Origin: Trichoplax adhaerens
Lineage: Eukaryota > Animalia > Placozoa
Reading direction: 5' to 3'
Assembly: GCF_000150275.1 (NCBI RefSeq)
Contig: NW_002060955.1
Location: 850,287 to 914,286, forward strand
DNA: 64,000 nt
The notes below the pieces were generated by a model. That model was not told where the DNA came from. It searched no databases and saw nothing but the letters and a program-made list of their open reading frames with translations. Shown piece by piece: positions 1 through 49,005 of the stretch (its first letter is position 1; each line of letters begins with the position of its first letter). Both the position numbers and the translations under genes were made by a program.

Positions 1-355
1 TAATTTTAGCTACTGCTCCCTTAATGCAGACAACAGTATTTACGAACATAGACATGTAATGACTAATACAGAATAGTCAGATTACGATATGTCCTATCAC
101 GGAACATTTCCATGATAATTTACAGTCTACTATAAGTAAATTACAATCACAATGATTGGAACTGTAAGCAGATGATTTGCATTCCCTATTAGAACTATTA
201 ATTTCAGTATGTGTATAAGTGTCACTGTCATAAAAAGTCAGTGCTATATTAAAATACAGTATATCCAAATTAGAAGTTAACTAAATAAGGATAGTCTAAC
301 AGAATTATCCTAACATAGTTATTTCTACTGTAATACAGTATTTAACACTGTAACA
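1..355 (-). mobile_element. LTR family B, partial copy running off the window start (U3 end at 355)
   Basis: Reverse complement of 653-1007 with only a handful of substitutions; ends ...AACACTGTAACA (TGTTACAG on the - strand); same family as the TSD-flanked solo LTR at 15018-15644. Confidence 0.85.
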
Positions 356-652
356 CTATACTATTGCAGTATTCTGTTATTTAAAACAATTCCTTATAAT
401 ATTTTATGATGCAGAGATACAAGTTGTGATAGTTGATGGAAAGTGAAAAGAAATTGTTAATATTTTATAATAGCGTACTTAAAATGAAATATTTTTAATG
501 ATAAAACTAGTAGATTGATGATAGATAAATGACCAAACGAGAATACTTTACAATTTTCAACACTGTCTTTATGGCAAAACAAGTAACGGAATCGTTCTGT
601 TAAAATTATACTATTCTAAAAGAGCCCATTATCGGATATTAAAGAGTGTTAT

Positions 653-1213
653 TGTTACAGTGTTAAATACTGTATTACAGTAGAAATAACTATGTTAGGA
701 TAATTCTGTTAGACTATCCTTATTTAGTTAACTTCTAATTTGGATATACTGTGTTTTGATATAGCACTGACTTTTTATGACAGTGACACTTATACACATA
801 CTGAAATTAATAGTTCTAATAGGGAATGCAAATCATCTGCTTACAGTTCGAATCATTGTGATTGTAATTCACTTATGGTAGACTGTAAATTATCATGGAA
901 ATGTTCCGTGATAGGACATATCGTAATCTGACTATTCTGTATTAGTCATTACATGTCTATGTTCGTAAATACTGTTGTCTGCATTAAGGGAGCAGTAGCT
1001 AAAATTAATATCTAATTCAGTAAATGATTCTAATGTTAATTGTATTAACTATGACTCATGAACTATTGAGGAATAGTATATAAATGCAGTATATCGTGAA
1101 ATAAAGAAGAATTGTCCAACTTAGTGTTTAACGTAAAATACGAGGCGTTTAAGTCTTTGTGTAGTCTGCTAGTAGAGCAAAAGTGTTTGTGATAGTGCAG
1201 ATATCGTTCCTTG
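653..1213 (+). mobile_element. LTR family B copy, 3' end lost in the gap
   Basis: Starts TGTTACAG; TATATAAA near 1077 followed by AATAAA near 1100; colinear with 15018-15574 up to the N run. Confidence 0.85.
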
Positions 1214-12700: not shown

Positions 12701-15700
12701 GCGTTTTTGAACAGGTTTTTATAGGGAATTCTGCTTAAGGCTTTCCTAAATGCTACTGCAAATGCCCACATCGAATCATAGCAATAGCTGTAGTAGGCAT
12801 TAGATGTTGCTTTGCCATAACTCTTTAGAAATCGGCTGTGAAATTGTTTACCAGTCTATATCAGAAAAAAGTAATGCTTTCTGAGTCTTCTTTGAAATCA
12901 TAAATAATACTGCCTAGACTTTAGCAGTAATAATGAAACCGCTATTTCTAGGTCCATCAAGGATAGCTGCTGGATTATTCTGCTTTACCAACTACAGCAT
13001 TAACTCGTGTATACTGGTAAATCTAAAGTAAGGTATGTTTCTATATAAAAGAAATACGAGTATGTACTTTGGCCGCAATTATGCGACCTCTTATAGTAGT
13101 TCTTAATACCTAATAATTGAAATTTCAATTTTTAGCCATAACTAATTCTCGATCAAATATCTGCATCTATTTTCCGATGAGTAACTTCTTGTGAATATGA
13201 TAATATTATAGCGTAATTAGTATTTTTAATGATATCACCTCAGACTCTTAACAATTTACCGTAACTTTGTCGTGCTATTTTCTGGGGATTAATGGCAGTT
13301 GATCATAACTGATGCTTTACATGATATCAAAATTCATTGCTTATTTTGAAATAAGGTAAATTTAACTAAATGAACCAAATCTATTCTTAAAATCTTTAGA
13401 TCTTTCTACACTAAATTAGTATTATACGCTTATAAGAAGCTAATTTACTACCACTTACTGTATACTTGATAATGTTACAACATTAAAGTCTGACAAGTCC
13501 ATCTATGACGGGCCTTAATTCAAATGCAAATTTTCGCTAATATCAAATCTATATTTTGACGCATTTTACCTGTTTGCTAATGCTAATTCGATCACTCTGA
13601 TCAAAATTAGGTACTTTAACAGCAAAGGCGTTATTTAATGAAGATAAAACGTCATCTTCTGTGCAATTTAATCCGAATCGACTTGCATGCACTTCAACAT
13701 CTTGCCACCAATTTTTTTCTCCAAAATAGGGTATTATCCAAACATATTGACTTCCATATAAATTATATTTCGTTGCCTAAGAATTGTTATTAAAGCTTAA
13801 ATCTAGTGCTGTCTTGATGAGTAATAATTAAATTCTAATAATGCAGTGTAAATCTGTTTTATAAAATTGTAGATTGTTAAGAGACAGGAATAGCCCAAAC
13901 TTGCAGCATAAATTGAGAGTGCGCTTTGAAATCTACTTTACGGTAAGCTGATTGATATTCCTATGTAGATATTATTAAAATTTAGCACATTTATACACAT
14001 TAAACACAGTGTGTTCCTGTTCAATTTACTACGTCAGTATTGAATTAATCGATTCCTACAAATAGTTTAACAAAAATATATTAGGTTAGTCTACTAAGCT
14101 ATATCGTATAAACTTAGAATCTGTACTCGCAACCTTAACATCCTTCGAGGAAATAAATTCAGTCTAGTTAAACTAGTTGGGAATTACTATTTTAGTCCAA
14201 CTGATCCTAAATTAAGGATTGTTAACATATCAACTGTTGCCCACTAATATTACAGTCAAGGAGACCGTAAATATTGTTGACGTATAAGCATATATAGAAT
14301 GTAACATGGCAATAATGTACAAATTAAGAAAATTTACTTTCGTAATAAGATAAATTGCCTTCTCTTCAAGGCTGAACAATCTATACTAGCAAGAAATAGA
14401 ATTCTCAGTTGAAGTAAATAGTGTTAACTTACTGCACATAATAATACCGCTGTAAGGTTCGCATCCGCAAATACCGTAAATAGACTTCGTGTTTCTTTCT
14501 TAATAGTATAAAAGTAGAATAATTTAGCACACCAATAACAACCTGCATTAATCCAACATGGTATTAGATTGCACCAAGGTAACAATTTTAAGGCATTACT
14601 GATAGCAATATTGCAAGCTTATATGTACATTAAACTTTATCATCTCATCTTGTCCTTAATGACAACTTAAAATGATCAACAAAACTACTAGAATAGGCTT
14701 TAAAATACCATAAAGTTTAAATCGAAACGGCTATATACCTGTATCTGCTCCATTGCATGAGACATCATAGGGGGATGAGATACACTCATAGATCTATAAT
14801 AGTATCCATCACGCTTACCCAAATCTTTCAAATAGGTAGAAGTCTAAAACAGATAAAGCATTGCTATATCAAATAATTACATAGTTAAGGGCCAAATTTC
14901 ATCGAGCCCAGTGTGCCCTTTCAAGCATTTAGAAATTAGATGGTACAAGTAATCAGTTTCTACTCTCATCAAGGCTACTTAAATTAATATGACATGATAC
15001 TAAGGTAATTAAAGAATTGTGACAGCGTTATATACTGTATTAGTGTAGAAATATCCATGTTAGGATAATTTTGTTAGCCTATCCTTATTTAGTTAACTTC
15101 TAATTTGGATATACTGTGTTTTAATATAGCGCTGACTTTATGCGACAGTGATATCTACATATACTGAAATTACTAATTATATTAGGGAATGCGAATTATC
15201 TACTTACAGTTCGAATCATTGTGATTGTAACTTACTTATGGTAGATTGTAAATTATCGTGGAAATGTTTCGTGATAAGACATATCGTAATCTGATTATTC
15301 TGTATTAGTCATTAGACGTCTATGTTGGTAAATACTGTTGTCTGCATTAGGGAGCAGTAGCTACAATTAGTATCTAATTCAGTGAATGATTCCAAAGTTA
15401 TTCGTACTAACTATGACTCAAGAACTATTGAGGAAGAGTATATAAACGCAATATATCGTGTAATAAAGTCAATTGTTAAAGTTAGTGTTTAACGTAAAAT
15501 ACGAGGCGTCTAAGTCTTTGTGTAGTCTGCTAGCAGAGCAAAAGTGTTTCTGATAGTGCAGATATCGTTCCTTGATACGTAGTTCAAGAAATTGACTTAT
15601 TGATCCTACATTACGTTATCTAGTTGCAAAGCTGTTTTGTGAGAAGAATCTAATTAATAGTAAACGCACAGCCGTATCTAAATCTATCAGATAAAATTTA

Positions 15701-23242: not shown

Positions 23243-24943
23243 GGTTATAAAATAGCAAAGTAGTAGCAATCAACACTTTCTAAAACCGAATTTTGACGTT
23301 ATTTTTTATGAAGTAGCAAGCTAAATAGCTTATGCTGCAACTAATTTGTTGAGAAAATGAATAAAATGGTCTTTTTACATTTGTTTATTAATTAACGGTC
23401 TTAAAAGGAAGGGCATGATAAGAATAGACTATTCAATAGCGCAATGAAAGGGAGCTGGCTGCTACTTAACTTATCTTGTCATTGTTGAGGACAACGCATT
23501 ATAAGTGATAATTAATATCTGACCGATGTTATTCTAGGCGTAGCTATTCAATATGTGGCAAGATATTTGGACCAATAGGATTGATTATTTCCATAATATG
23601 TTATTTATGTGTCATTTCATGATTAGAAATATTTGAATCGCCGTGTTGTATAAGCTTAAATTGTTATACTTACTAAAGTATTTAATAATTAGGAATGGCT
23701 TTTTGTTCTTGTGGACTTTATTAATCAATTATCACACGTGAATGCATAATGAACATAATCTATGATTAATTAATCAATGTATCATGGCCATTTTTAAAAT
23801 ATAAATAGGTTACTGAAATTTGCTATATTAAATGTTACCTATTGCTTGATATTATGATGCATCTGAATGATATATTTGTTGGCATTTCTGCTCAATTGTC
23901 GATTGACTGTGACTTATATAAAATTATTCACAGCTATTGTTTGCTTTTAAAACCAATACTCAGCAAAAGTGCGATGAATGGATTTCTTTATTTCTGATCA
24001 ATTTTAGGATAGTAACTTGCCGATCAAAGTTGCTCAAATGATCAAAGACTTGCAGATGAAGCAATTGAATCTATACTACAATCGTGGCAGGAAAGGATTT
24101 TGGGGTATACGCATAGATGTTCCTTTAGTGCTTTATCAGCATATATTTCTTANNNNNNNNNNNNNNNNNNNNNNNNNNNNNNNNNNNNNNNNNNNNNNNN
24201 NNNNNNNNNNNNNNNNNNNNNNNNNNNNNNNNNNNNNNNNNNNNNNNNNNNNNNNNNNNNNNNNNNNNNNNNNNNNNNNNNNNNNNNNNNNNNNNNNNNN
24301 NNNNNNNNNNNNNNNNNNNNNNNNNNNNNNNNNNNNNNNNNNNNNNNNNNNNNNNNNNNNNNNNNNNNNNNNNNNNNNNNNNNNNNNNNNNNNNNNNNNN
24401 NNNNNNNNNNNNNNNNNNNNNNNNNNNNNNNNNNNNNNNNNNNNNNNNNNNNNNNNNNNNNNNNNNNNNNNNNNNNNNNNNNNNNNNNNNNNNNNNNNNN
24501 NNNNNNNNNNNNNNNNNNNNNNNNNNNNNNNNNNNNNNNNNNNNNNNNNNNNNNNNNNNNNNNNNNNNNNNNNNNNNNNNNNNNNNNNNNNNNNNNNNNN
24601 NNNNNNNNNNNNNNNNNNNNNNNNNNNNNNNNNNNNNNNNNNNNNNNNNNNNNNNNNNNNNNNNNNNNNNNNNNNNNNNNNNNNNNNNNNNNNNNNNNNN
24701 NNNNNNNNNNNNNNNNNNNNNNNNNNNNNNNNNNNNNNNNNNNNNNNNNNNNNNNNNNNNNNNNNNNNNNNNNNNNNNNNNNNNNNNNNNNNNNNNNNNN
24801 NNNNNNNNNNNNNNNNNNNNNNNNNNNNNNNNNNNNNNNNNNNNNNNNNNNNNNNNNNNNNNNNNNNNNNNNNNNNNNNNNNNNNNNNNNNNNNNNNNNN
24901 NNNNNNNNNNNNNNNNNNNNNNNNNNNNNNNNNNNNNNGATTC

Positions 24944-25370
24944 TGTCACGGTACGAACTAATGTAAAGAAATAGCTATCTAAATTTGGCGAATATAATAT
25001 AGTGATAATATATTACAACTAGTTACTTATAAAAGGAATTACTCTAATTATAAATGTGTTACAGTAAATTTAATTATGTGCTGTAATGTGCACTAAAATG
25101 ATTCTGTGAATGGACATATTGTAGTCCGACTGTGAAAAACTAGTTAGTAGATGTTCTCACCTAAGTATTTTTATAAGATGACTTGTGAATGTTAGCTGCT
25201 GTAGAAGGGTGTATAAGCTCATCAGATAGTTGAATTAAGTAGTTCTCAATTGTCTAGTTGAGTTTAACGTAGAATCAAAGGCGTCTAAATTCTTGTGAGT
25301 AGGGATACTGAATTCGCAGATTTTAGAGATTTGTTTTACGTTATCCTTGTCACGAAGCTGGTTTGTGACA
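24944..25370 (+). mobile_element. Solo LTR family A (427 bp)
   Basis: TGTCACGG...TTTGTGACA; reverse complement of the 25730 and 28943 copies; ATTC on both sides (4 bp only; left flank is next to a gap). Confidence 0.9.
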
Positions 25371-25729
25371 ATTCTTAGTAAGATTCTACTAATGCCAGAT
25401 TGAATCAGACTAACTGTTATATAGAATAGCTTGTTACATAATTAAACCGATAATTGAAGATGGAATAATTCATCCCATTGCCAAATTATGAATTTTATAA
25501 GTTGCAGAACAGATACTATTTATTGTCTACCTCTGTTTCATCGGAGAATTTCAAGGTTATGTTCTCGGGATAAAATACTCGTCAATAACATAAAAATGCT
25601 CAAAGTCAATGCTATTACTCGTACACTTTTAAGGGTTCGATTTGATGAACTTGTTTACGTAAAATTGTATAAAATAGAATAATGGAATAGCTGAATATTT
25701 TAATTAGAATACGAGTATTAACATCCAAG

Positions 25730-26163
25730 TGTCACAAACCAACTTCGTGACAAGTATAACGTAAAACAAATCCCTAAATTACTATAGTCTCCGGGATTCA
25801 GTATCCCTACTTACAAGAATTTAGACGCCTTTGATTCTACGTTAAAACAACTATACAATTGAGAACTGCTTTATTCAACTATCTGACGGGTTTATATACC
25901 CTTCTACAGCAGCTAACATTCACAAGTCATCTTATAATAATACTTGGGTGAGAACATCTACTAACTAGTTTTTCACAGTCGGACTACAATATGTTCATTC
26001 ACAGAATCATTTCAGCACACATTACAGCACAGCAATAAATTTACTGTAACACATTTATAATTAGAGTAATTCCTATTGTAAGTAACTAGTTGTATATAAT
26101 ATCACTATACTATATTAACCAAATTTAGATAGCTATTTCTTCACGGTAGTTCGTACCGTGACA
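25730..26163 (-). mobile_element. Solo LTR family A (434 bp)
   Basis: TGTCAC...GTGACA termini, TSD CCAAG (25725-25729, 26164-26168); TATATAAA followed by AATAAA on the - strand sets the orientation. Confidence 0.95.
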
Positions 26164-26476
26164 CCAAGATACAGTATTAACGTATCAAGATCTTGATGCG
26201 TTCATTAACGGCAAAATTTTAGACTGCTTCTAAAAATAGGACATGGATTCTAGAAAACATATTTCATTAGTTGTTGTCAAATGGGTTGCAATATTAATCA
26301 TTTCGATCCACAGACACCTTCAGCTAATTCAGCTTAACCAATAATAACTTTCATATTCTATTTATGCAGTCTATAGCCCAATATAATTATGCCACTTTTT
26401 ATTAATAATTTTACCAGATAACGCCTATTTTGGCTATGTTGACCAACAATGCTGTAATCTCATGCATTAAACCTAC

Positions 26477-26744
26477 TACCCTTCTACAGCAGCTAACATT
26501 CACAAGTCATCTTATAAAAATACTTAGGTGAGAACATCTACTAACTAGTTTTTCACAGTCGGACTACAATACGTCCATTCACAGAATCATTTCAGTACAC
26601 ATTACAGCACAGCATTAAATTTACTGTAACACATTTATAATTAGAGTAATTCCTATTGTAAGGAACTAGATGTAATATATTATCACTATATTATATTAAC
26701 CAAATTTAGATAGCTATTTCTTCACGGTAGTTCGTACCGTGACA
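26477..26744 (-). mobile_element. Truncated LTR family A (U3 portion only)
   Basis: Near-identical to about 25897-26163; ends TTCGTACCGTGACA; R/U5 missing, no TSD seen. Confidence 0.9.
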
Positions 26745-27096
26745 GGGTGATACTGTATTGCAGTCCCAAGCTTAATCTTCTTTTTCAAGCCAAGGTATCA
26801 AGGTGGTGCTAGCATTTATTGAAGGATATACTGTATCAATAGTACACACGACAATAAATAGCATTCTAGCCGTGATGCTTTTACCATGCTTAGGTATCGT
26901 CAAAATTAGATCAAACTATGTCAGTAAAGGAAGAGCAATATAAACAATCCATACAGTGTATTAAAGATTTCAACGCCGGCAAATAACTTGGTAACTTGAC
27001 GTATATGCGTGTATGTACAGTAAATTATATTAACACCGCTAAGATAGAGTGGATATTCCTACTAAAAGAACGAATTAGTATAATAAAACAGAGTTA

Positions 27097-27645
27097 TATT
27101 ACGGGGCTATCTTACCGTTAGGATATTTAGCAGTGCATTAGTAGCTAATACGGAAAATATCCATATTTGTAGTGCTAGGTAAGATAAGTAATGGCTTAAC
27201 GTTGATATTATTGTGATATTTTATTACATATTTGATATTGATTCTTATTAAGTGTAGATAGTAGTAAAATGATTCAATTTCTAGCTAATGATAGTTGGAC
27301 TAGACAACATACATGCTTAGATTAAGATTAAGTATGAGTAATAGGTTAAAAATATTTACTGATAGAAAAGTTATATAAGGAACATCTCAGTTCGAGACAG
27401 CCATCCTTGAAAGGTATAATTGTAATGCTGTTGTCATTTTAAAAATTAGACGCTTCCAATGTAAACGAGAATATTTGAGTTGAGCTGTATTGTAAAAAGT
27501 TGTAGATGTGTCTATGCTAATAAAATTTCTATCTTTACGGTACCTTGCTATGTGTGTTTAAAGTTTAGTAAAAGAGCGTTTAAGTCAGTCGTTACTAATA
27601 GTCTTTTACTTTATATTTCTTTGTCGCAAAGTTTAAAATGTGACA
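27097..27645 (+). mobile_element. Solo LTR family C (549 bp)
   Basis: TATTACGG (decayed TGTTAC)...TGTGACA, TSD AGTTA (27092-27096, 27646-27650); homologous to 6584-7703 in the opposite orientation. Confidence 0.85.
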
Positions 27646-28942
27646 AGTTAATAAGAAGTTGTATATTGTTCTTATTATATTATTTTTGAGGCATTTAATC
27701 ACAAATACTAGTAACATTTTTCATAGATACCTGTACTAGGATACCTAGAGGATGATATTCCTAAAACATATCGTATGCAGTAATGACAGAATGTCTCGTT
27801 AAAATTCCTTACTAGGCCTTAACTATTATGCTAAGATACTTAAGATTATACGCGATTACATAATATATTCTGTCTAAGTTATGTTACATTGGCCATTTCA
27901 ATTACTTCTTATTGTGAATATTAAATATATCTACCTTTAACGATGAAATACTGTATCATTAACAAAAAGGTTATAAAGTGAAAATGATTATAAAAAGTTT
28001 TGATATTAATTCGATCCACGAAGCTATTTTTCAGTTATTTAATTAAGCAATTTCAAGCAACATATTATATAAGATTTCTCAGTATATCTCAGTTTATATC
28101 AAGTCAAATGAAATAACCTGAAATAAAAATTTTGTTATTATTTCTTGTTCACTATCTAAGCAAGAATTTATTAATTTGTAAATAAATGACCAGTAACAAC
28201 GGCAAAGATCTGACAAAATGGACAATTAGTCAACAATATATAAGTTATCCATTATTTTATATTCACCATCAGAATTCTCCAAAAATGTTAATTATTGAAT
28301 TATAGACAATTACTGACAGTAGAAACTAGAATAACTTCAACAATGTAATATTGTACTGCAGCATAATGATAAATGTAATATGCCAAGAAATTTTAAACCA
28401 ATTTAGCGTATTTCGACGGTGTCGAAGATCGCCGTTAAGTATAAATACGTTATATTGATCGTATACAGTGATAGCTAGCTGTAAAGTTATAGCCTATGAA
28501 ACAAATTAGTATTTCAGCAAGAACAAGTGAATCAGTTAGACACCGGATTTATATGACAGCTTGAAGTTCAGATCAAGTTCTAATCATGATTGGCTCGTGT
28601 TATATGCGTGTTCTACCGCTTCTTTAAATTAGAACATAAAGTGATATGAATTAAGGCCCAAGAATATACGACAACTGTGCCGTTTATTAGTATTAATTTT
28701 CACGTATATATAGATACTGGTACGTTATATAGTTGCTCGTGGATATAGATAGAAGGTATAAGAGCGAGTTACTTTTCGCAATAAAGAGAATTCGCTATTC
28801 TATCCTTTATGCGTCAAGTCTATATCATATTTGCTGCAAAACTGAAGGAAAAAATTCATAGTTGTCACGGGAATTAATGTTGATAAGTATTTGGAGATAG
28901 TAGGAGAACCAGAAATATCTACTGTGTATCTTATTAATTATT

Positions 28943-29378
28943 TGTCACAAACCAGCTTCGTGACAAGGATAACGTAAAACAAATCTCTACATTACTATAG
29001 TCTCCGGGATTCAGTATCCCTACTCACAAGAATTTAGACGCCTTTGATTCTACGTTAAACTCAACTAGACAATTGAGAACTGCTTTATTCAACTATCTGA
29101 CGGGCTTATACACCCTTCTACAGCAGCTAACATTCACAAGTCATCTTAAAAAAATACTTAAGTGAGAACATCTACTAACTAATTCTTCACAGTCGGACTA
29201 CAATATGTCCATTCACAGAATCATTTTAGTGCACATTACAACACAGCATTAAATTTACTGTAACACATTTATAATTAGAGTAATTCCTATTGTAAGTAAC
29301 TAGTTGTAATATATTATCACTATAATATATTAACTAAATTTAGATAGCTATTTCTTTACGGTAATTCGTACCGTGACA
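28943..29378 (-). mobile_element. Solo LTR family A (436 bp)
   Basis: TGTCAC...GTGACA, TSD TTATT (28938-28942, 29379-29383). Confidence 0.95.
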
Positions 29379-32265
29379 TTATTACAACTAGTTCTAATAT
29401 CACCCTCAGTGATATCTTTAGATTTTCACTTTAACTTGCTTTCTAAAATCAACAGAGATGGAGAATATTAAAAGTCATAGGTCGACTTATTCAAGACTTG
29501 GATAAGGAGAACGTAGAGAAAAGAAAGCCAGGATAGTTTATAACATCATCTTCAGCAGGGCAAATAAGCAGTAAAGCTCTTTCAAATAATTTAATGCGGA
29601 CAGTATCTTTATTCAATCATATCATTTTCGGATCGAAATCGTTAAAGTATCGGTATTCCAAAGCTCATACAGTCGTATTCTCATCATGATATAGGAAACA
29701 GTCTACTTGCTATCTATTCTATGATTTACTCGATTACAAATAATAGGCGAACCGTGGATAAATAAGTTGATCAATTGCAGTTTACTATTATAATATTACA
29801 GCTATTCTCAACTGCTATAATTTTTATGTCGTTGCTCTAATTCTTCTATCTATTTAATGAGTAACTTAATTCCGTTTTCCTTGACTTAACTTTATTATAA
29901 TGATGTTATTGTTCATCGGATTGAGACATAAAGATTTTTTTTAAATTAAATACGATCTTCCTATATTTCTATATTTCTAATACTTATTTTAGCTTAGTAT
30001 TTATGTCAATTAAAGATAAAATCGAATGAAATTACTTTGATTGTTCCTAGCAGATGTAGACTATTCCAATAATATCGCCATTGTTCTAGTTGTCTTCTTG
30101 AAAGCTAAAAGTAGTAGTCAAAGAAATTGGTTGTATATGTAATAATCGCATTATTGAGCACATGATCAATTTGACGCTTATGATATTTATTATTAGACAC
30201 AGTGGTGCATTCCGAGTCGGACATAAAAAAATAACTATATTTTAATGAATTGGCTGCTTTAACTTAAAGATTATAATGGAGAATATGACAAGGATTTATA
30301 TTTATGACAATTTGAATCAACTTGCTCATTTAGTCGTCAAATATTCTGTTACTGAGGCAGAAACATATATGCATATATACTTTAAGATATTTTTGAAATT
30401 AATTACGGTTCATCTATTTGAAAGTTTAAATTAATACATTGACTATAAATAATAAGAAGCCTTGCTTTAGCTTTTTCGTAAAGTAATTTGGACTAACAGG
30501 TATATTTGATAAATATAAACTAAGCCATTTTGATAATTGGGGTATTTCATAAAGTTTCCAGAGTAACACTTTTAAGATAAGGCATAAAAAGGGTTGGTAA
30601 TAAAAACAGAAAGGCTGAAATATAAATATTTAACTTTCTCAAGGTATTATTTCTTAATAATTTCTTGAGCGTTTAGTCAAATATACTAAATCTTGAAATT
30701 ATTACCTCATAAGATCAAAACTGAACTGATAGAAAAAATTATATGCATTTTTATTTTTTCCTACAGGTATTTTGTCATAGTGTTGTTTTTTGTTTCTAAG
30801 ACCATCAGTGATTACCTTTAAAGATAATATGGCCACTGTTGTGTGTAAAATTTAACAAAATTATGTTATTAAAACTATACTAAATTTTGTAGTTGGTTCT
30901 AGAGGACGTACTGTATATGTATAAAATCTGAAATTTCGTATCATCTTCTCTTCTTACGTAACTTAAACTGTTTAGTTGAATCTAAATCAAAGAAATGATA
31001 TAGTATATGATACTAAGATCTATTAAATTATTCATACTGCAATCAAGAAATAATTAACCGTTAAGCTTTTGTAATACTACAGTAGCTGATATAGGTGAGT
31101 GATGCCAATTTTATCATAGAGAACAGTAAAAGCTCCACATTATGAAACCCAATATGACTTTATCGTGACATAAAACTGAGACAAGTTAGTACGTCGAATT
31201 ACTTGAGCTACAATTAAGGTATAACAAATTAAATGTCTTGACTTTTAATCCCGATAAAAACTACGCGCTAGACTGCCGGCTAGGAGCACGTGTTACTTAT
31301 AAACAGGCTTGGTACTCATTCCATTAACAATTTTCTGGCACTGCAAAACTGTTCAAACTTAATCCAGCTGACAAGGCAACTTGCATCCTGTGAATAACGA
31401 TAATCTTGTCGGAGTTATAAAGAAAGTCAGAGATCCTTTTATTAAATCGCTATATTAATTTCAAGCCAAATCACTAAGAAGGGGAGCTTCTTGCAGTGAT
31501 TTTCACTTTAGTCTTGATCAAATAAGAAAGGTTCTAGTCATTAATGCTCAATTCTGCATCCTCTATCAATAAATATAAGGGCGACGACTCCCAGTAGTAT
31601 CCATTACGAATTTAACTTGGATAGAATACAGACATCAGTTTAGGCTAACATTTGCAATTAATACTCGTATACAGTTATCATCATTGGTTGATTACTTCAA
31701 AGATCAAGCTCTGTATGTGTTGCTAATGTAGCAATCTTAACAATTCTTTGGCTTTATTTGCAACTTCAGAAGCAAGGGTAACGAAAGTGGGTGAGGTTCG
31801 CATAAGGTAGAAAGATCGCTATAAGATCAATAGATCATCATAAAATGCTGGTAATTAATTTTGTCTTGATTTTCAACTGATAAATAAAGATTATCATATA
31901 ATTTTAAGTTAACTCCGTGATTATTCCGTAATGTGAAAACCGCTATGGTAGATCAAGTTAAGGAACAGAACCATCGATAAAATTTCTACAATTCCATTTA
32001 TGTTTTGATCAAATCATCCGTGACTCAACGAAATTGACTAATGGAACAGATTAGAATTACATTCCCAGAATATAAAATATCTATACGCATTCATAACACC
32101 TATAATTACCTATATTTATAGCTATTATGAGATGAAAGTTAGAGCTGGTTGAGTCCCCAAAAATGCAGACAATAATTATAATTAATTAGTCTAAGTGATG
32201 ATATTTTTGAAAATAAATGACGATATCAATTTCCGCGCCGTAGTCACTCGATCTGCTAAAGCTAC

Positions 32266-32847
32266 TGTCACAATCACAAACCAAACTCGCGGTGAAGATA
32301 ACCTAAAACAAATCTCTAAATTACTATAGTTTCCGGGATTCAGTATCCCTTAACTAGAACTATTTCACAAGAATTTAGACACCTTTGCTTCTACGTTTGA
32401 CAACTATAGAACTCTTCTTTTATACAATTATCTGCGAAGCTTAAATACCCCTTCAGCTACAGCTATCATGCATTTGTTATACCAGTCCATGAAATTTACT
32501 TCATATTTGATAGCTAAATTAATACAGAAATTGTTCATAATCTTAAATATGTACTGAATGATTCTAGGTAATTAGATTACAGTAGTGCATACACAGAATT
32601 ATTTATAGTATCACCTATAATTGAATATCTTCAGGATATTCATCATAAGCGTTACAAGACATAACACTATAATCAATTAACATTAGTTTCCGTATGAGAA
32701 CTCTTACTACAGTACAGCATAATTTACTGTAACAAAATAAAAACTACCGTAGTTACTGTAAGTCATTATTATTTATCTTTATACAGTATATAAATTTTAA
32801 CCACTAAACTTAGTCATTTACGCTTTACGGTGGTTTGTACCACGAAA
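32266..32847 (-). mobile_element. Older, longer solo LTR related to family A (582 bp)
   Basis: Shares AAAACAAATCTCTAAATTACTATAGT.TCCGGGATTCAGTATCCCT and the TTTACGGT..TT.GTAC end with family A; different middle; TSD GCTAC (32261-32265, 32848-32852). Confidence 0.85.
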
Positions 32848-42612: not shown

Positions 42613-45034
42613 CAATTAGCAAGAAATTCTGATACTACAATGGCATTCATTTCAAATAGGACTAGTACTCATTTGTAAAGATTCGAACTAATCTATAAGC
42701 TAACAGTGAGTTTTTGTTATTAATATCGAATACAGTACCTACGCGTACATACTTTTCTTTATTTTATGATAGCTGATAATTATAGATAATTCATTATTAT
42801 CCATCGAATTATAACTTATGATCAATCAGATACATTACGATTTGATTTGGCTCACTTTAAACTACCTCATGTTGGTATACAATTTGATTTTACGATCGGA
42901 AATTGTTTTTACGTATTGTTCATACATCCTGGTGGTTACATCTGGAGTATGGACGGCATCAAGTGAATTTGTAGTATTTAACTTTAATGTAGAATGGCTA
43001 TAAACAAGCACTTGAAAGTAGAATAAACGTATTGCTTTTACCACACTAATGGGAATAGTATGAAATACTAGTTAGTCATAATTTCTATGTTGGGCTACGT
43101 CGCATAAATTGGATGGTACAATAATTGATTTCTTCTTTACAAATTAATTATGCTAGCCGTTTTCATTGTATTATTATTCTTTTTTTCTGATCTTCAATTT
43201 TATTAATGCTTGTAAGCTAATACTGCGGTAAGTGTTGCCATTTATCTCGCGAAATACGCATAGATTATTGAAGTAACAATTATGATGCAAATAATACGTT
43301 GGTTATTTAATATAGAGCAAGTTGTTCACTTTGCTGCCATGAGCAATAAATTGATATCCATGACATTAAGATTTGAAGGATAAAAGTGTGAACATGTAGG
43401 AAGATAATAAAGCGTGGTATAGCTGTAGATGATGTTAAGATGAAAATAGAAGGGATCCACTGTTGCTGGTCATTAACATATTCGTATCGTAGTGGTTGAC
43501 TATTCTTTACAAATAATGATTGATCTACAGCATAATAACGAGGTGTTTCTTCGCTTACCATGACCTTGTCCGTGGTGTAAATTAAGAATCCTGTGATAAT
43601 CTAGATGATAATGTTGGCGAAAGTTGTTGGTAGTCTTTGACCTACAATAGTGGTTAAATAGCTGATATAAATAAGGACTAATTTGTCTAAGGTAGCAAGC
43701 TAAAATCAGATTTATTGAGATTCAAGTCAAACAAGCTTGCCTATTCTTTAGCTTACTATTCCACTGTAAGTTCGGCAAGTAAAGTAATCCTATCGTACCG
43801 TCAGCAGGTGTCAATTTGCTTTCATCACCCATCAGTAGATTAACTAATTCATTTTCATCTACTAAACGATACAGTTTATTGCATTAGGCTTGTTTAACAA
43901 TGCATCAAGTCCCAAATATAAATTCCATTTCAATCGCTTTCTGCTAGCTGTAGCCGTGTTCATCAGTTGTTGTAGCGTTACCGCAAATTTACGCATCCGT
44001 CATTTCATTTTTCATTGATGGAAGGAAACAATTTGCTTCCATAGGAGACTATATGATATCTAGAGTGATGTTCTAGTTTTATCCATAGTCTATAGAAGGA
44101 TAGAGGAATCAGTTGTGTCTACCCGCGTATAATAGCAGTGGCAGTAAATGGACTTATAGCAGCGCGACTGCAGAGTGATATCCATTTTTTTGGTGAGGGC
44201 CGGTGGGGGGGGGGGGGAATCTGAATTTGTCCTTGTACATTGTACAATTAATGATACAGTTGACGAATTGCTCTGAACCTTCAAGTTAGTAAAGTACTGT
44301 ACTAATATAAAGTACCGTTTTTAAGCGGCGAAATATTTTTTCTATCTTATTTATTTATTTACTTAATTTAGATTCTTCCCTGGAGCTGTGGTACCAGCAG
44401 TGAAGGGAGTGCCAAAATAGATCACTGACTATACACGATACACAGTAGAGTGGTGTGAGGCAGTTTGCTTTGTAGTTGCCAATATTCAGCTGAAATGATT
44501 CTACACATTCTTGATTATCCTCCTCTACTCTATACTAGTACCACCGTAAAACGAGTAAAATGAGTTTGTAGGATAATTGACGCAAGATATGGAGTGCCAG
44601 CAAACTGCCGCTCATTACAGTGTAAGGGAATTGATGTGGTAGCCGATGGCATTCACACTATTTCAGTAGTACTTGATATGTGTGCTGTTCTATGCTTCAC
44701 TTCCAAGTTGTGTATAATTGTCACAAACCAACTTCGTGACAAGTATAACGTAAAAACAAATCTCTAAATTACTATAGTCTCCGGGATTCAGTATCCCTAC
44801 TTACAAGAATTTAGACGCCTTTGATTCTACGTTAAAACAACTATACAATTGAGAACTGCTTTATTCAACTATCTGACGGGTTTATATACCCTTCTACAGC
44901 AGCTAACATTCACAAGTCATCTTATAATAATACTTGAGTGAGAACATCTACTAACTAGTTTTTCACAGTCGGACTACAATATGTCCATTCACAGAATTTG
45001 GGCCTGAGTTCTCGACACTTGGTTCCTCTTTCGG

Positions 45035-45052
45035 ATCCCACCGCTGCCACCA
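45035..45052 (-). promoter_or_regulatory. Primer-binding site for tRNA-Leu
   Basis: The - strand reads TGGTGGCAGCGGTGGGAT, complementary to the 3' 18 nt (including CCA) of tRNA-Leu; 13 nt are identical to the tRNA fragment at 15780-15792. Confidence 0.9.
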
Positions 45053-45162
45053 ATTTAGGCCCGAATTTTGTGAAAATTTGGTAGAAATTGGAATCCGTGT
45101 GGGGAATCCAGCAATATTGCGTTAGTATATTAAATTTTATAAAAGCTATTACACTGATTAGA

Positions 45163-46104
45163 ATGTCTGAAACCACGCCGAAGACCAATTTGCGCAGTCT
45201 TACGAACGAGGAAGAAAGCCGGCTAGAGGAGCTGGAAAACTTTTCAGACGAACAATTAAAAAGTATGGCTAAAGGTTTAGGCATACATATCGGAAATTCA
45301 AAAACCGCTACTTTGGCTAGGAAAATTTTACAGAAAGACACTGAAAAAGCCGAAGCATTTCTTGGTGCAAGTGCACAGCCTCGTACTGAACCAAGGCCTG
45401 AAGAAAATGTTTCTCAAGGGCGAGAACAAACACTGGAGCGAATCCTAAGCCAAATGGTACTACTACAACAACAATTATTGAATAATCAAAATAGACGGGA
45501 TTATTTGGAAATAAATATTCCACCACTCCCGGAAGACAAAGATGTAGATAACTGGTTGCACATGTTTGAGAAGACAGCAACAGTCAATCGATGGCCGAGA
45601 CATGAGTGGGGAGCTCGTTTAGGACCCTTATTAACTGGTGCAGCTCTCGAAGCATTCAGGGAACTGACGTTGGACGAGCAGGAGGATTTTGATCATGTAA
45701 GGCAGATAATCCTTCAGGCTTATGTAATTTCATCAGATGTGTTCTGTAGGAAATTCTTTACGCTACGAAGAAAAGATGAGCAATCTTTCAGTGAATTTGG
45801 AAGAAAGAGAATGCATTACTTGAAGCAATGGATAGCAACAAGTAGCAAGTCTGTGGAAGATACTGTCATAATGGAAATCCAATATCAGGAATGGGCTCGA
45901 GCAAAGAACTTTGCTCTGTTAACATATGTGCAAGTGAGACAGCCGCAGAGCTGGAAAGAACTGATGTTAGCAGTCGATCAATTTGAAGCACAGAAAAGAG
46001 ACTCCGTAGCACCTAACATTGGCAAAGGGCGACAAATTGGAAAGGATAAGAAGGCTTCCACACTAGAATATGAAGAGGAACCTGTGAAGTCTAAATTCTT
46101 GTAA
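45163..46104 (+). CDS. Ty3/Gypsy (Gmr1/SCAN-related) Gag capsid protein, 313 aa, C-terminally truncated
   Basis: Uninterrupted ORF with FEKTA..NRWP...W...L.PLLTG.ALEAF..L.....DF..V...IL.AY......F.RKF pattern; no zinc knuckle; the last codons and TAA stop come from the LTR fragment. Confidence 0.85.
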   Translation: MSETTPKTNLRSLTNEEESRLEELENFSDEQLKSMAKGLGIHIGNSKTATLARKILQKDTEKAEAFLGASAQPRTEPRPEENVSQGREQTLERILSQMVLLQQQLLNNQNRRDYLEINIPPLPEDKDVDNWLHMFEKTATVNRWPRHEWGARLGPLLTGAALEAFRELTLDEQEDFDHVRQIILQAYVISSDVFCRKFFTLRRKDEQSFSEFGRKRMHYLKQWIATSSKSVEDTVIMEIQYQEWARAKNFALLTYVQVRQPQSWKELMLAVDQFEAQKRDSVAPNIGKGRQIGKDKKASTLEYEEEPVKSKFL

Positions 46105-46819
46105 GTAGGGATACTGAATCCCGGAGACTATAGTAATTTAGAGATTTGTTTTTACGTTATACTTGTCACGAAGTTGGTTTGTGACAATAATGTACCCTAT
46201 AAGTGTGTCCATTGTACAAGGGACTACTACCGGTAGGATTATTATTTTAAAAGCAGTATATAAGCAAATTATTTTCTGACAGCATACTGCTGTACTGTCT
46301 CTGATTCCTGGTCTGTATGGTCATGGCATTGAATAAAGACAGTGGAAGCGCATGCTGCGCGTGATAATGCAATCTACTTTTGGTTGTGGCGTTACTCTAA
46401 TGCAATGGTCTAGTGTCAATGATGGTCATTCTAATCACTTCACTTCTACCAGTAGAGTATTGGGTATTTGCTAGTAATTTGTCAGGAAGAAAGTTGTCGT
46501 ATAGCAGCACAGTCCTCTCCGTCTTGATCATGGGATAGAATTGCTGTGCTCGATTTCTCTTTCTATGCGTTGCTATGGTTTTAGATTTGGCTTTTTGAAA
46601 GCCTATTGGCACAAAGTACTTACAAGACAGGTGCATTAGTGCTGTGCTTCTTGATACTACTACTACTACTGTCTACCGTCCTTTTCTTTTTTTTCTTGGA
46701 CTGTTATCCTCCTCCTTCTTTGGAAAACCTTACTCTCGGCATGGGGTAGTGCACAGTCTGACTCAGATTGCGACAACGGAGTCTGCACACCAGTGTTACC
46801 ATGGTGTTACACTGTTGAC

Positions 46820-49005
46820 ACTGCAGTACCAGTATACAGTACACTATACAGCGTATGAAAAAGAGTTTTTTTCTAAGTACAGTACAGTACAATGTCCAGT
46901 AGTACCGTACCGTACTGTACTGTACAGTACAGTGTAGTGTACAGTAGTTTTGAAAATACTGTACTGTACCGTTGTAAGACTGTACACTGTACAGTACAGT
47001 ACTGTCGATCAGTACTGTAGTTTTGAAAATACTGTACAGTACAGTACTGTACCGTAGTTGCGTATATTCTTGTAGAAAAAACATGCTGTACAGTACTGTG
47101 TACAGTATCATTAATAATATCGTGGTGAGTTTAGCTGGAGAAGTTTGAATGGTAGAGAAAAGACTTTGGCGTGTCAATTCATAGCGTACTCGTACAGTAG
47201 AACATGCTGACATGAAAAAAAATGAGAAAAATCTGTATACTGAACATTGAGTGTACAGTACAATCGCAGCGACCACGATTTTTGTCGATCGTTGTGCACT
47301 ACGGTAGATTGAAAAGGAATCGAGTGTACAGTACGGTACTGTCCAATGTCCATTGAGTGTACTGTACTGTACTGTGCAATCGCTGCTAACACGACTTCTG
47401 TCGATCGTCGTGCACTACTGTACAGTGTACAGTACTGTACTGTACGCTAGATTGAAAAAGGAATGGCGTGTACAGTGTACAGTACGGTCCAGCGTAGTAC
47501 ATTGTACTGTACTGTACAGTATTATGCTCGTCGTGAAAGCGTAGGTACTGTAGGGAGGGCGTTCCCGTTCTGCTACAGCCGCACAATGGAACGTCCTTAT
47601 TTGTTTGTCTTTCACCGGGCCCGAATACTACAATTGTGATGATGTAGCGCACAATGTGCAATGTGTACAGTACAGCATTGTACACTGTACAGTGTACAGT
47701 ACTGGCTGTATGGCATACAATCGATGGTCATGTTCATAATATCGGCATTCAAGCCCACTTACAGTACAGTATTGACTATTGTACAGTACACTGTACAGTA
47801 CAGACTGTATGGCATACTGTAGAATCGAGGGTCATGTTCATAATCGGCATTCAAGCACAGTTACAGTACAGACAGTACGGTACAGTACAGTATTGATTGT
47901 TGTGCTGTACACTGTACACTGTACAGTACAGTACGGTGGACCAGAAGGCTCAGACAATGTCCGCTGTTGTTGTCCAGTACTATACCGGTGCACCGTATCG
48001 TACTGTACAGAAAAAGCTTGTTTGCTTTTTGCTAGCGTACAATACAGTGCAATGTGTACAGTACTGTACACTGTACAGTATGGCATACTGTACAGGGAGA
48101 TGCGGGAAATTTCGAATTTATGGTACCAACGTACTGTACCAACAGAAAGTGGTCCTGGTCCTGTAGTACTGTACACTATACTGTACTCAGTGTACTGTAC
48201 TGTACTGCACAGACTGTGTAACTAACCATGCATATCCCCCGTTATTAATAATGCACTACGTAACGACATGTAACAGTACTGTACTGTACTGTATACATAA
48301 GTCTCATTTGTACTGTAGCGGAAACGCTCTTCAGAAGAAGAGTAAGAAGCATAGGGGCAAAATTGCTAAACGACTAAATGACTTCCTTACTTTCTTGCCA
48401 CTCTCGGTACCGAAGCGCCGTCATCGGTATGATAACGATAATACTGTACTGTACAGTGTACAGTACTGCACCGTAGTGCTGTAGATCATACTGTGTAACT
48501 TTGCAGTTTGCACGTAATTTCGAAATTTCCCGTATCTCCCAGTACAATCGAGGGTCATGTTCATAATCGGTATTCAAGCACACTTCTTCAATAACAGTAC
48601 AGTACAGTACAGTATTGATTCTTGTACTGTACTGTACAATGCCCACTGTTGTTGTCCAGTACTATACCGGTCGACCGTATCGTACGCACGGTCGACCAAT
48701 TGGCTTCTTTGCTTTATTCTACAGTACAATGTAGTGCGTGACTGTACTGTACTGTAGGTGCAGTGGCATTGTTCTGCCTACAGTACTCTACTGTAGCAGT
48801 CGTCACCATGACCTACTGTACAGTGTACAGTACAGTACTGTACACTGGTCAAATCAACATGCACTCTGCTGTCCATTGGTCAAGTACAGTACAGTACACT
48901 ACAGTACCATCGTGCTGGCTCAATACAGTACTGTACAGTACAGTACAGTACTGTATTTGGCTTGTGGTCCATGGACACTGAGTAGACTGTACTGTAGACT
49001 GTAGC
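46820..49005. repeat. Low-complexity TACAG/CTGTA (GTAC-palindrome) domain with internal direct and inverted duplications
   Basis: Very dense TACAGTA/TACTGTA/TGTACA/AGTACT words in both orientations, interleaved with duplicated 20-60 bp unique blocks. Confidence 0.9.

Follow-up and report, generated by a model that had tools for sequence, protein, structure and literature searches.

The window, a 64,000-nucleotide stretch of the Trichoplax adhaerens genome, contains a 1468-bp unit at positions 44719-46186 that is built from parts of a long terminal repeat (LTR) retrotransposon of the family referred to here as family A. From left to right, the unit and its borders consist of the following features.

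44714-44718: left copy of the target site duplication (TSD), ATAAT; empty-site contigs join 44713 to 46187, and the five letters fit either side
44719-44816, minus strand: left terminal inverted repeat (TIR), the terminal 98 nt at the U5 end (...GTGACA) of the family A LTR in reverse complement, an exact inverted match to 46089-46186
44719-44997, minus strand: LTR part of the left arm, LTR 157-434 (3' part of U3, R and U5)
44860-44865: AATAAA, within the LTR part of the left arm
44882-44888: TATATAA, within the U3 part of the left arm
44988-45074: quasi-palindrome, a 19/23 inverted repeat (44988-45010 and 45052-45074) with a 41-nt loop holding the primer binding site (PBS)
44998-45034, minus strand: leader of the left arm in reverse complement, the ~37 nt nearest the PBS on its downstream side
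45035-45052, minus strand: tRNA-Leu PBS, 18 nt, in reverse complement
45053-45056: switch point, comprising the AT spacer, one U5 base (T on the plus strand) and one extra T
45057-45162, plus strand: leader of the right arm, starting ~33 nt downstream of the expected PBS position
45163-46104, plus strand: intact gag open reading frame (ORF) of 313 aa
46089-46186, plus strand: right TIR, LTR 338-434 (U5 end), fused directly to gag
46187-46191: right copy of the TSD, ATAAT, placed from the empty site and from reading the sequence

The two 98-nt termini (44719-44816 and 46089-46186) are both the U5 end of the LTR and form a perfect inverted pair, in agreement with an earlier note on this DNA, which had described two mirror-image U5 ends on 98-bp TIRs. 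Both are complete to the final U5 base, and when the flanks are included (44714-44816 and 46089-46191) the inverted arms match over 103 nt at 99% identity. A five-A variant in the termini had been taken as private to the unit, which was incorrect: the solo LTR at C1414:3837027 carries the same 98 nt with 100% identity. The whole LTR part of the left arm (44719-44997) showed 98.6% identity in BLAST to the solo LTR at 25730-26163. On the plus strand, the parts are ordered as in a minus strand read from 5' to 3' (U5-R-U3, leader and PBS, all in reverse complement), followed by a copy in plus polarity; the polarity turns forward after 45056. The promoter of the left arm, if any, is directed leftwards, away from the interior. 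A sense promoter for gag, direct LTRs, a polypurine tract (PPT) and pol are all missing from the unit. The left deletion joint (44997/44998), where leader meets LTR 157, lies inside a 10/12 similarity between leader and LTR, and the microhomology proposed for this joint is thus present. At the right deletion joint (46088/46089), where gag meets LTR 338, microhomology amounts to 1 nt at most.

The gag is the sole ORF of the unit, which is missing the CCHC knuckle, PR, IN and RT. Its C-terminus is completed by the LTR, which supplies the final five codons and the stop. Alignment to gag-CCHC paralogues indicated that it stops ~25 residues short of the expected CCHC knuckle; identity to gag paralogues was 38-54%. 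A Pfam search with gag gave no significant family and a word-indexed protein search gave no match, and relatives were found by an exhaustive protein search, which returned about 2900 database proteins. The long homologues have the architecture CA/SCAN-CCHC-IN-RT-RNaseH, and within the same genome the gag is homologous to that of gag-CCHC-PR-IN-RT elements (C1162).

The family A LTR is 434 bp long (TGTCAC...GTGACA) and occurs in ~400 copies in the genome, the solo LTRs being 97-99% similar. We inspected 36 of the LTR copies, including same-orientation pairs 3-7 kb apart, and 30 of them were flanked by their own perfect 5-bp TSD, equal in length to the duplication at the unit. All 36 were separate copies, with internal sequence neither between nor beside them, and no full-length family A element was present in the assembly. 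Five family A copies lie inside an 8-kb part of the window, and the genome list of copies includes several close inverted pairs. A second inverted LTR pair was observed at window positions 1-1007, with its outer ends lost in assembly gaps.

The PBS at 45035-45052 reads TGGTGGCAGCGGTGGGAT in reverse complement, a sequence that matches the tRNA-Leu(AAG) and tRNA-Leu(TAG) genes of the same genome by complementarity to their 3' end with CCA added. The PBS pattern also follows a U5 end at 10 other LTR loci, where the LTR end precedes the spacer, and the unit is the only PBS locus without an LTR beyond the AT spacer. A family A LTR adjoins the PBS 15-mer at one locus only, the truncated relic L032. 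The native order of U5 end, AT, PBS and leader was confirmed in this relic and in three sister families, and the initial 24 nt of the left arm leader are identical to the relic sequence. In a contig of run X2, the first 39 nt of the leader continue straight into the stretch beginning at 45057; the right arm leader was also compared with the leaders of the sister families. The native order of the leader is known only from the 24-nt relic, the sister families and one X2 contig.

Measured against this order, the orientation switches at the U5/PBS border, as had been proposed; the PBS is preserved, as are the AT spacer and a single base of U5. The U5/PBS border is where minus-strand DNA ends in retroviral reverse transcription. 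The centre of the unit reads reverse-complemented PBS, AT, T and forward leader, and contains neither an LTR end nor ATAAT. The T at 45056 is templated by neither side of the switch. Three Watson-Crick and two G.T pairs can form between AATTT at 45052-45056 and GAGTT at 45006-45010. The 19/23 inverted repeat described around the PBS is indeed present (its left half is partly LTR sequence) and is the sole such match outside a microsatellite in 34 kb, and the central hairpin had a z score of -2.6, beating 197 of 200 shuffles.

The ATAAT repeats at the two borders had been read as a TSD, and empty alleles confirmed it. Contigs of four public runs carry the empty site with a single ATAAT and omit exactly 1473 bases (1468 + 5). 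Since the empty site retains one ATAAT, the 5-bp duplication is real; the chance of a 5/5 TSD match is 0.0018. The unit is therefore polymorphic for presence and absence, and it was heterozygous in two samples. Two of the samples with the empty site contain contigs of low depth that are 90-95% identical to gag. Contigs of runs X2 and X3 extend across the left flank (44633-44744), an X3 contig is collinear with 45026-46133, and 1.1-kb contigs of both runs span the right deletion joint, all with zero differences; these pieces cover the left flank, the centre, gag and the right joint, and exclude the left deletion joint (44997/44998). In run X2, a 2025 sample, the segment 45006-45056 (~50 bp with the PBS) appeared inverted relative to the window. 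Two sources were considered for this odd contig, an inversion of the whole interior via the 98-bp TIRs and the integration of a dimer made of two identical snap-back strands, and both were rejected, since neither would create its new internal junction. No tRNA gene that might have served as an integration target lies within the window.

The interior of the unit (44998-46088) was searched at the DNA level against the whole assembly (105.6 Mb), which returned its own locus and a 47-bp PBS-leader relic only. The read depth of gag corresponds to one haploid copy. The earlier note had allowed for either a one-off event or a propagating family; as the interior has no second copy in the genome, the former holds and the latter does not. 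The unit is a dead-on-arrival single insertion, not a propagating TIR family, and it is incapable of being copied again.

The best reading of the unit is an aberrant cDNA with two U5 ends that was inserted in one integrase event. The exact empty site, the TSD of family length and the intact U5 termini favour a single insertion event. The palindromic U5-to-U5 insertion put forward earlier is upheld in part, namely in its LTR parts, its two U5 ends, its single entry with a TSD and its switch at the border. The fuller account traces the unit to a single round in which reverse transcription of a Gmr1-like Ty3/gypsy element (family A, tRNA-Leu primed) went wrong, snap-back or re-priming included; in our estimate this account has an even chance of being correct. 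In such a round, the minus-strand cDNA would be completed to its natural stop at the U5/PBS border. The second strand transfer would then be skipped, and the 3' end (...CCAATT) would re-prime ~40 nt upstream on minus-strand DNA, either on its own strand (snap-back) or on a co-packaged copy. Synthesis would proceed in reversed polarity through leader and gag to U5, yielding a DNA with a U5 terminus (...GTGACA) at either end, which the integrase of the element could insert in one concerted event with the 5-bp duplication usual for the family. Two internal deletions, one from leader to LTR 157 (at the 10/12 microhomology) and one from gag to LTR 338, would bring the product to 1468 bp, and they may have arisen through template jumps during synthesis or through later slippage.

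The anatomy, the position of the border, the TSD with its empty site, the single copy and the polymorphism are established by the data, whereas the snap-back, the part played by the integrase and the time at which the deletions occurred are inferred. That the switch leaves the PBS and the AT spacer in place, together with a single base of U5, favours the end of the minus strand as its position, and the 5-nt pairing, the hairpin score and the unique 19/23 repeat at the same place favour snap-back. Snap-back of a finished minus strand is the most economical origin, though not a proven one, and several points count against it. A fully self-copied hairpin has one open end, so that a duplex with two U5 ends needs an extra step. 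The untemplated T at 45056 does not suit snap-back, and the inverted segment 45006-45056 in run X2 is not predicted by it. Furthermore, the left arm retains LTR 157-337, which is absent from the right arm, and the right arm retains gag, which is absent from the left; because the present arms are not mutual copies, snap-back needs two further independent deletions. An intramolecular snap-back giving a full palindrome that was later trimmed in both arms, as the earlier note had envisaged, is one possible course; the arms carry different deletions. In several respects, an intermolecular strand switch or a pair of cDNAs accounts for the unit just as well.

A single concerted integration of two incomplete cDNAs, each with one U5 end and with the inner ends sealed head to head by host end-joining, is a somewhat unlikely origin that nevertheless deserves serious consideration. 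One molecule would have ended at the PBS border, and the other would have been broken 33 nt into the leader. Two such cDNAs explain the TSD, the empty site and the intact U5 termini as well as snap-back does, and they explain the differing arm deletions at once. The inner junction, where clean homology is slight or absent and one base is untemplated, also resembles end-joining. In-vitro concerted integration assays routinely use two donors, both with U5 ends, which likewise counts for two cDNAs. However, two defective molecules, each with a large internal deletion, would be needed in one integration complex, and it is unclear how the PBS end of the left molecule became double-stranded without a PPT. 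The 5-nt pairing and the central quasi-palindrome would, moreover, be a coincidence.

A rearrangement at the DNA level after ordinary integration is improbable. It might have begun with a double insertion of family A elements in opposite orientation into the same ATAAT, the centre being deleted later, or with one normal insertion scrambled by replication template switches at the TGTCAC ends or at microhomologies. The strong clustering of family A insertions (five in 8 kb, with close inverted pairs genome-wide) speaks for such a route, as do the TGTCAC that starts both LTR ends, the microhomology at the left deletion joint, and the inverted LTR-element tandems that have been ascribed to double insertion in Drosophila (PMC5932611). 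However, among several thousand positions, a chance break at the centre would have had to hit the U5/PBS border to within one base, and the centre retains neither the target motif nor an LTR terminus. An identical 5-bp target would have to be hit twice, and three or four separate breakpoints would be required.

We give very little credence to a mobile non-autonomous TIR element, moved as DNA by an integrase-like transposase and belonging to or founding a propagating family. The 98-bp TIRs, TGTCA termini and 5-bp TSD do match the ranges of Ginger/TDD elements (PMC2836005), but the interior occurs once in 105.6 Mb, gag has the depth of one haploid copy, no transposase is encoded, and the TIRs are plain family A U5, common to ~400 solo LTRs. 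An artefact of the reference assembly, which nearby assembly gaps and the repeat termini might suggest, is scarcely credible: contigs assembled in independent studies agree with the window at every base across the left flank junction, the centre, gag and the right deletion joint, and the same contig sets show the alternative empty allele.

Read as an aberrant two-U5 cDNA, the unit offers a clean record of a reverse-transcription accident, for which the flanks, the empty allele, the exact switch base and the normal architecture of the family are all available. It implies that the integrase of an LTR element can insert DNA with two U5 ends in vivo. It also bears on the open question, raised for Ginger, of a possible origin of integrase-type TIR transposons from gypsy elements (PMC2836005), since it shows that the required TIR end structure can arise in one step. 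That the unit represents a natural first step from LTR retrotransposon to integrase-type TIR DNA element, or survived by virtue of its inverted ends, or both, is a decidedly long shot; if true, an event of this kind that also took an integrase gene with it could turn a gypsy element directly into a Ginger-like transposon. Recombination to a solo LTR is impossible between inverted LTR ends, so the architecture may explain why this is the sole surviving internal sequence of a family of ~400 copies. The 98-bp inverted ends could also yield hairpin RNA against family A. Transposable elements in this compact genome have been described as inactive (PMC2871265, PMC6057997). These statements are qualified by family A, whose ~400 copies, 97-99% similar solo LTRs and present/absent insertion point to activity recent enough to still segregate. 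The wider importance of the unit is limited, because it is a single defective copy that shows no sign of function.

Among known systems, the unit shares most of its parts with Gmr1-like Ty3/gypsy elements, which have a PR-IN-RT pol order and a SCAN-like capsid domain in gag: the TG...CA LTR ends, the 5-bp TSD, the tRNA-Leu PBS 2 nt after U5 and a homologous gag. It differs from them in that its LTR pieces are inverted and both are U5, and in that it has no 5' LTR, PPT, zinc knuckle or pol. The two direct LTRs of a canonical LTR element, with outer U3 and U5 ends, are not found either, and the PBS lies on the strand opposite to gag, detached from any LTR end.

Self-primed, snap-back minus-strand cDNA is known from HIV-1 strong-stop DNA in vitro, where the 3' end at the end of the template folds onto a short complementary stretch and is extended, giving an inverted duplication. 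In the unit, by contrast, the stop would be the end of the full minus strand at the PBS, not strong-stop, and the product is integrated in the germ line with a TSD. No described U5/U5 or snap-back-derived integrated LTR element was found in the literature searched, which covered few subscription journals; because most such journals lay outside it, the missing precedent is weak evidence of novelty.

The Rover element of Drosophila forms inverted LTR retrotransposon tandems by double insertion (PMC5932611), which, like the unit, place two inverted element copies at one site. These tandems, however, keep complete termini and the target motif at the centre, whereas in the unit the PBS border meets leader at the centre, and one TSD surrounds the whole. 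The centre of a double insertion may have been deleted at a later time.

Ginger1 and Ginger2/TDD are cut-and-paste transposons with TIRs of 40-270 bp, TGTNR termini and a 4-5-bp TSD, and are evolutionarily linked to gypsy integrase (PMC2836005). The ends of the unit (98-bp TIR, TGTCA, 5-bp TSD) fall within this description. In contrast to Ginger/TDD, it has no transposase gene and no other copies, its TIRs are LTR U5, and its interior is leader and gag.

A DIRS-type element (tyrosine recombinase, internal complementary region, no TSD) was also considered and rejected: the unit has a TSD and no recombinase ORF, and its termini are ordinary U5 ends, which also occur in solo LTRs with TSDs.

TR-GAG elements encode gag only; they multiply, and they possess direct LTRs together with a PBS and a PPT. 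The unit resembles them in that gag is its sole coding capacity, but it differs from TRIM, LARD and TR-GAG elements alike, which have direct LTRs and dispersed copies, in being a single copy with inverted arms and no PPT.

The unit at 44719-46186 spans 1468 bp in AT-rich animal sequence. The outermost 98 nt at its two ends are exact inverted copies of each other and correspond to the U5 end of the 434-bp LTR (TGTCAC...GTGACA) of family A. Read on the + strand, the unit is composed as follows.

44719-44997: LTR 157-434, reverse complement
44998-45034: leader, 37 nt, reverse complement
45035-45052: primer binding site (PBS), 18 nt, reverse complement
45053-45056: AT, then T, then T
45057-45162: leader, forward
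45163-46104: gag ORF, 313 codons, intact
46089-46186: LTR 338-434

The TATA and poly(A) signals in the left arm are directed outwards. The unit lacks a PPT and pol, and gag has no sense promoter ahead of it; the unit is therefore unable to retrotranspose again.

The earlier note had traced these parts to an LTR retroelement, and this origin was confirmed by the PBS, by related loci and by gag. The PBS is complementary to the 3' ends of the genome's own tRNA-Leu(AAG) and tRNA-Leu(TAG) genes. L032, a truncated relic of family A located on a different contig, has an LTR ending in GACA followed by AT, the PBS and a 24-nt stretch that matches the leader of the window exactly, an order that establishes which end of the family A LTR is U5. 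All 10 other loci with the same PBS, from several LTR families, read ...GT(G/A)ACA, 1-4 nt, PBS, and at three of them an ~100-nt leader leads on into gag paralogues. Paralogues of the unit's gag showed 38-54% identity, one of them sitting in an element ordered gag-CCHC-PR-IN-RT. About 2900 database proteins are related to this gag, and the long ones have the Gmr1-like gypsy order: SCAN-like capsid, CCHC, IN, RT and RNase H. Alignments indicated that the window's gag stops about 25 residues short of the expected zinc knuckle. The Pfam SCAN domain of distant homologues lies within the part aligning to the unit's gag. The element that contains one of the paralogues (G000:C1162; L048, minus strand 7960-1792) encodes gag, CCHC, protease, integrase and reverse transcriptase, with integrase ahead of RT as in Gmr1-like elements. 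An intact gag-only ORF of 347 aa, 37% identical to the window's gag, was also observed at G000:C1400:684339-685382 (minus strand). It is preceded by an LTR-like end and by a sequence that nearly matches the Leu PBS (TGTTGG in place of TGGTGG), is followed by ~200-bp tandem repeats, and lacks an LTR pair; this may be a second surviving or co-opted gag.

We searched the 105.6-Mb assembly (1414 contigs) for further copies. The unit's interior was single except for a 47-nt relic, and its read depth corresponded to one haploid copy; of the two possibilities raised earlier, a one-off event thus stood and a propagating family did not. The family A U5 end had 408 genome matches, whereas a reversed-pattern control never matched, and many family A copies were 97-99% alike. 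None of the 36 family A copies inspected, including same-orientation pairs 3-7 kb apart, had internal sequence adjoining the LTR, indicating that the assembly holds no full-length family A element. The unit is the sole surviving internal sequence of family A in the assembly. Its interior probably survived because inverted ends cannot delete the sequence between them, unlike direct LTRs, which recombine to solo LTRs. The solo-to-complete ratio of family A is extreme, and the published description of this genome is that its transposable elements are inactive. Five LTR copies or fragments of this family occur in an 8-kb part of the window (24943-32350).

24943-25371, + strand: family A LTR
25730-26163, - strand: family A LTR
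26478-26745, - strand: family A LTR, partial
28945-29378, - strand: family A LTR
32274-32350: family A LTR fragment

Genome-wide, several pairs of copies lie close together, at spacings of 100 bp to 2.7 kb, with their U5 ends turned inwards, and together with the clustering they suggest a strong local insertion preference. The window contains no tRNA genes. Another LTR family (start TGTTAC...) is represented by two inverted copies, 98% identical, at 1-358 and 650-1007. Their U3 ends face each other over 291 bp; assembly gaps have removed their outer (U5) ends, and the pair may be a second U5-outward structure or two separate insertions. A third copy (15016-15574) is 87-94% identical.

Contigs from four public runs in three studies were compared with 44400-46500. 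All four runs yielded a contig joining 44713 to 46187, skipping 1473 bases (1468 + 5), and five letters fit on either side. These contigs represent the empty site, which has a single ATAAT and bears out the 5-bp target-site duplication (TSD) proposed around the whole unit. A perfect TSD of the same length flanked 30 of the 36 inspected family A LTR copies, and a 5/5 match by chance has a probability of 0.0018. The filled left junction (44633-44744) was also present, with zero differences, in runs X2 and X3, which carry different organism labels; the filled junction and the empty allele had similar depths, indicating that both samples are heterozygous. X12 and X13 showed the empty allele only, at full flank depth. 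Excision was set aside as the source of the empty site, since several nearby bases differ between the empty and filled haplotypes. A 1108-nt contig of X3, collinear with 45026-46133 with zero differences, confirmed the unit's centre and right deletion joint. X12 and X13 also contained low-depth contigs 90-95% identical to gag (45144-46015); somewhere in these samples there is a diverged relative, which may be a surviving family A-like element. Immediately right of the insertion lies a 2-kb field of ACAGT/CTGTA microsatellite (46820-49005), followed from 49214 by the N-terminal exon (MGC...KLLLLG) of a G-alpha (i/o-like) gene; the insertion is thereby placed about 3 kb upstream of the gene.

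At its inner end, the left arm keeps the PBS together with the AT spacer and a single base of U5. The U5/PBS border is the exact end point of a completed minus-strand cDNA. On the + strand, the left arm follows the 5'-to-3' order of a minus strand and gives way to leader and gag copied in plus polarity. Read from the sequence, three Watson-Crick and two G.T pairs are possible between the switch bases AATTT (45052-45056) and GAGTT (45006-45010). The 19/23 quasi-palindrome around the switch was significant, though 10 nt of its left half are LTR sequence introduced by the left deletion. Because polarity switches at the minus-strand end point and the switch bases can pair, we favour an origin in which a finished minus strand would have re-primed on minus-strand DNA, its own or a co-packaged copy, and the two-U5 molecule would have integrated in one concerted event. 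In their present form neither arm is a copy of the other, and re-priming therefore needs two extra deletions; one deletion joint lies at a 10/12 microhomology, and the other shows hardly any. If end joining had sealed two incomplete cDNAs, the unequal arms would be accounted for more simply, but the central pairing would be left to chance. A further point against re-priming is that a fully self-copied hairpin has a single open end, requiring an extra step to give a two-ended duplex. At the DNA level, a double insertion in inverted orientation (PMC5932611) with later deletions, or a normal copy scrambled by template switches, would make the central break at the U5/PBS border a coincidence.

Run X2 (2025), whose coded organism label is that of most runs containing this stretch, pointed to a different orientation of the PBS segment. 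Its 1095-nt gag contig, at filled-allele depth, had zero differences across 45063-46118 but its first 39 nt matched 45038-45000 on the minus strand, the two stretches having six letters (AGGCCC) in common at the joint; the forward-order leader leads directly into gag. The contig start is also the point of k-mer divergence from the L032 relic. The simplest reading, from the one junction seen, is that an ~50-bp PBS-containing segment within 45000-45063, lying between short inverted repeats, is inverted in X2 relative to the reference and X3, with the crossover within GGGCCT/AGGCCC. It may represent a recent inversion at the quasi-palindrome or a mosaic; the PBS-border junction is kept in either orientation isomer.

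We class the unit as an aberrant retroelement integration product. Its parts come from a Gmr1-like gypsy family, yet it does not have the architecture that defines LTR elements in their integrated state. Identity as a TRIM or TR-GAG element was rejected, and a DIRS-like element was ruled out by the TSD and the lack of a recombinase. No natural U5/U5 insertion of this kind was described in the searchable literature, the coverage of which is incomplete. A single dead copy carries limited weight. The unit shares with the Ginger/TDD transposons the length of its TIRs, the TGTNR ends and the TSD (PMC2836005), but has neither a transposase nor other copies. It provides a very clean record of an event relevant to how integrase-type TIR elements could arise.
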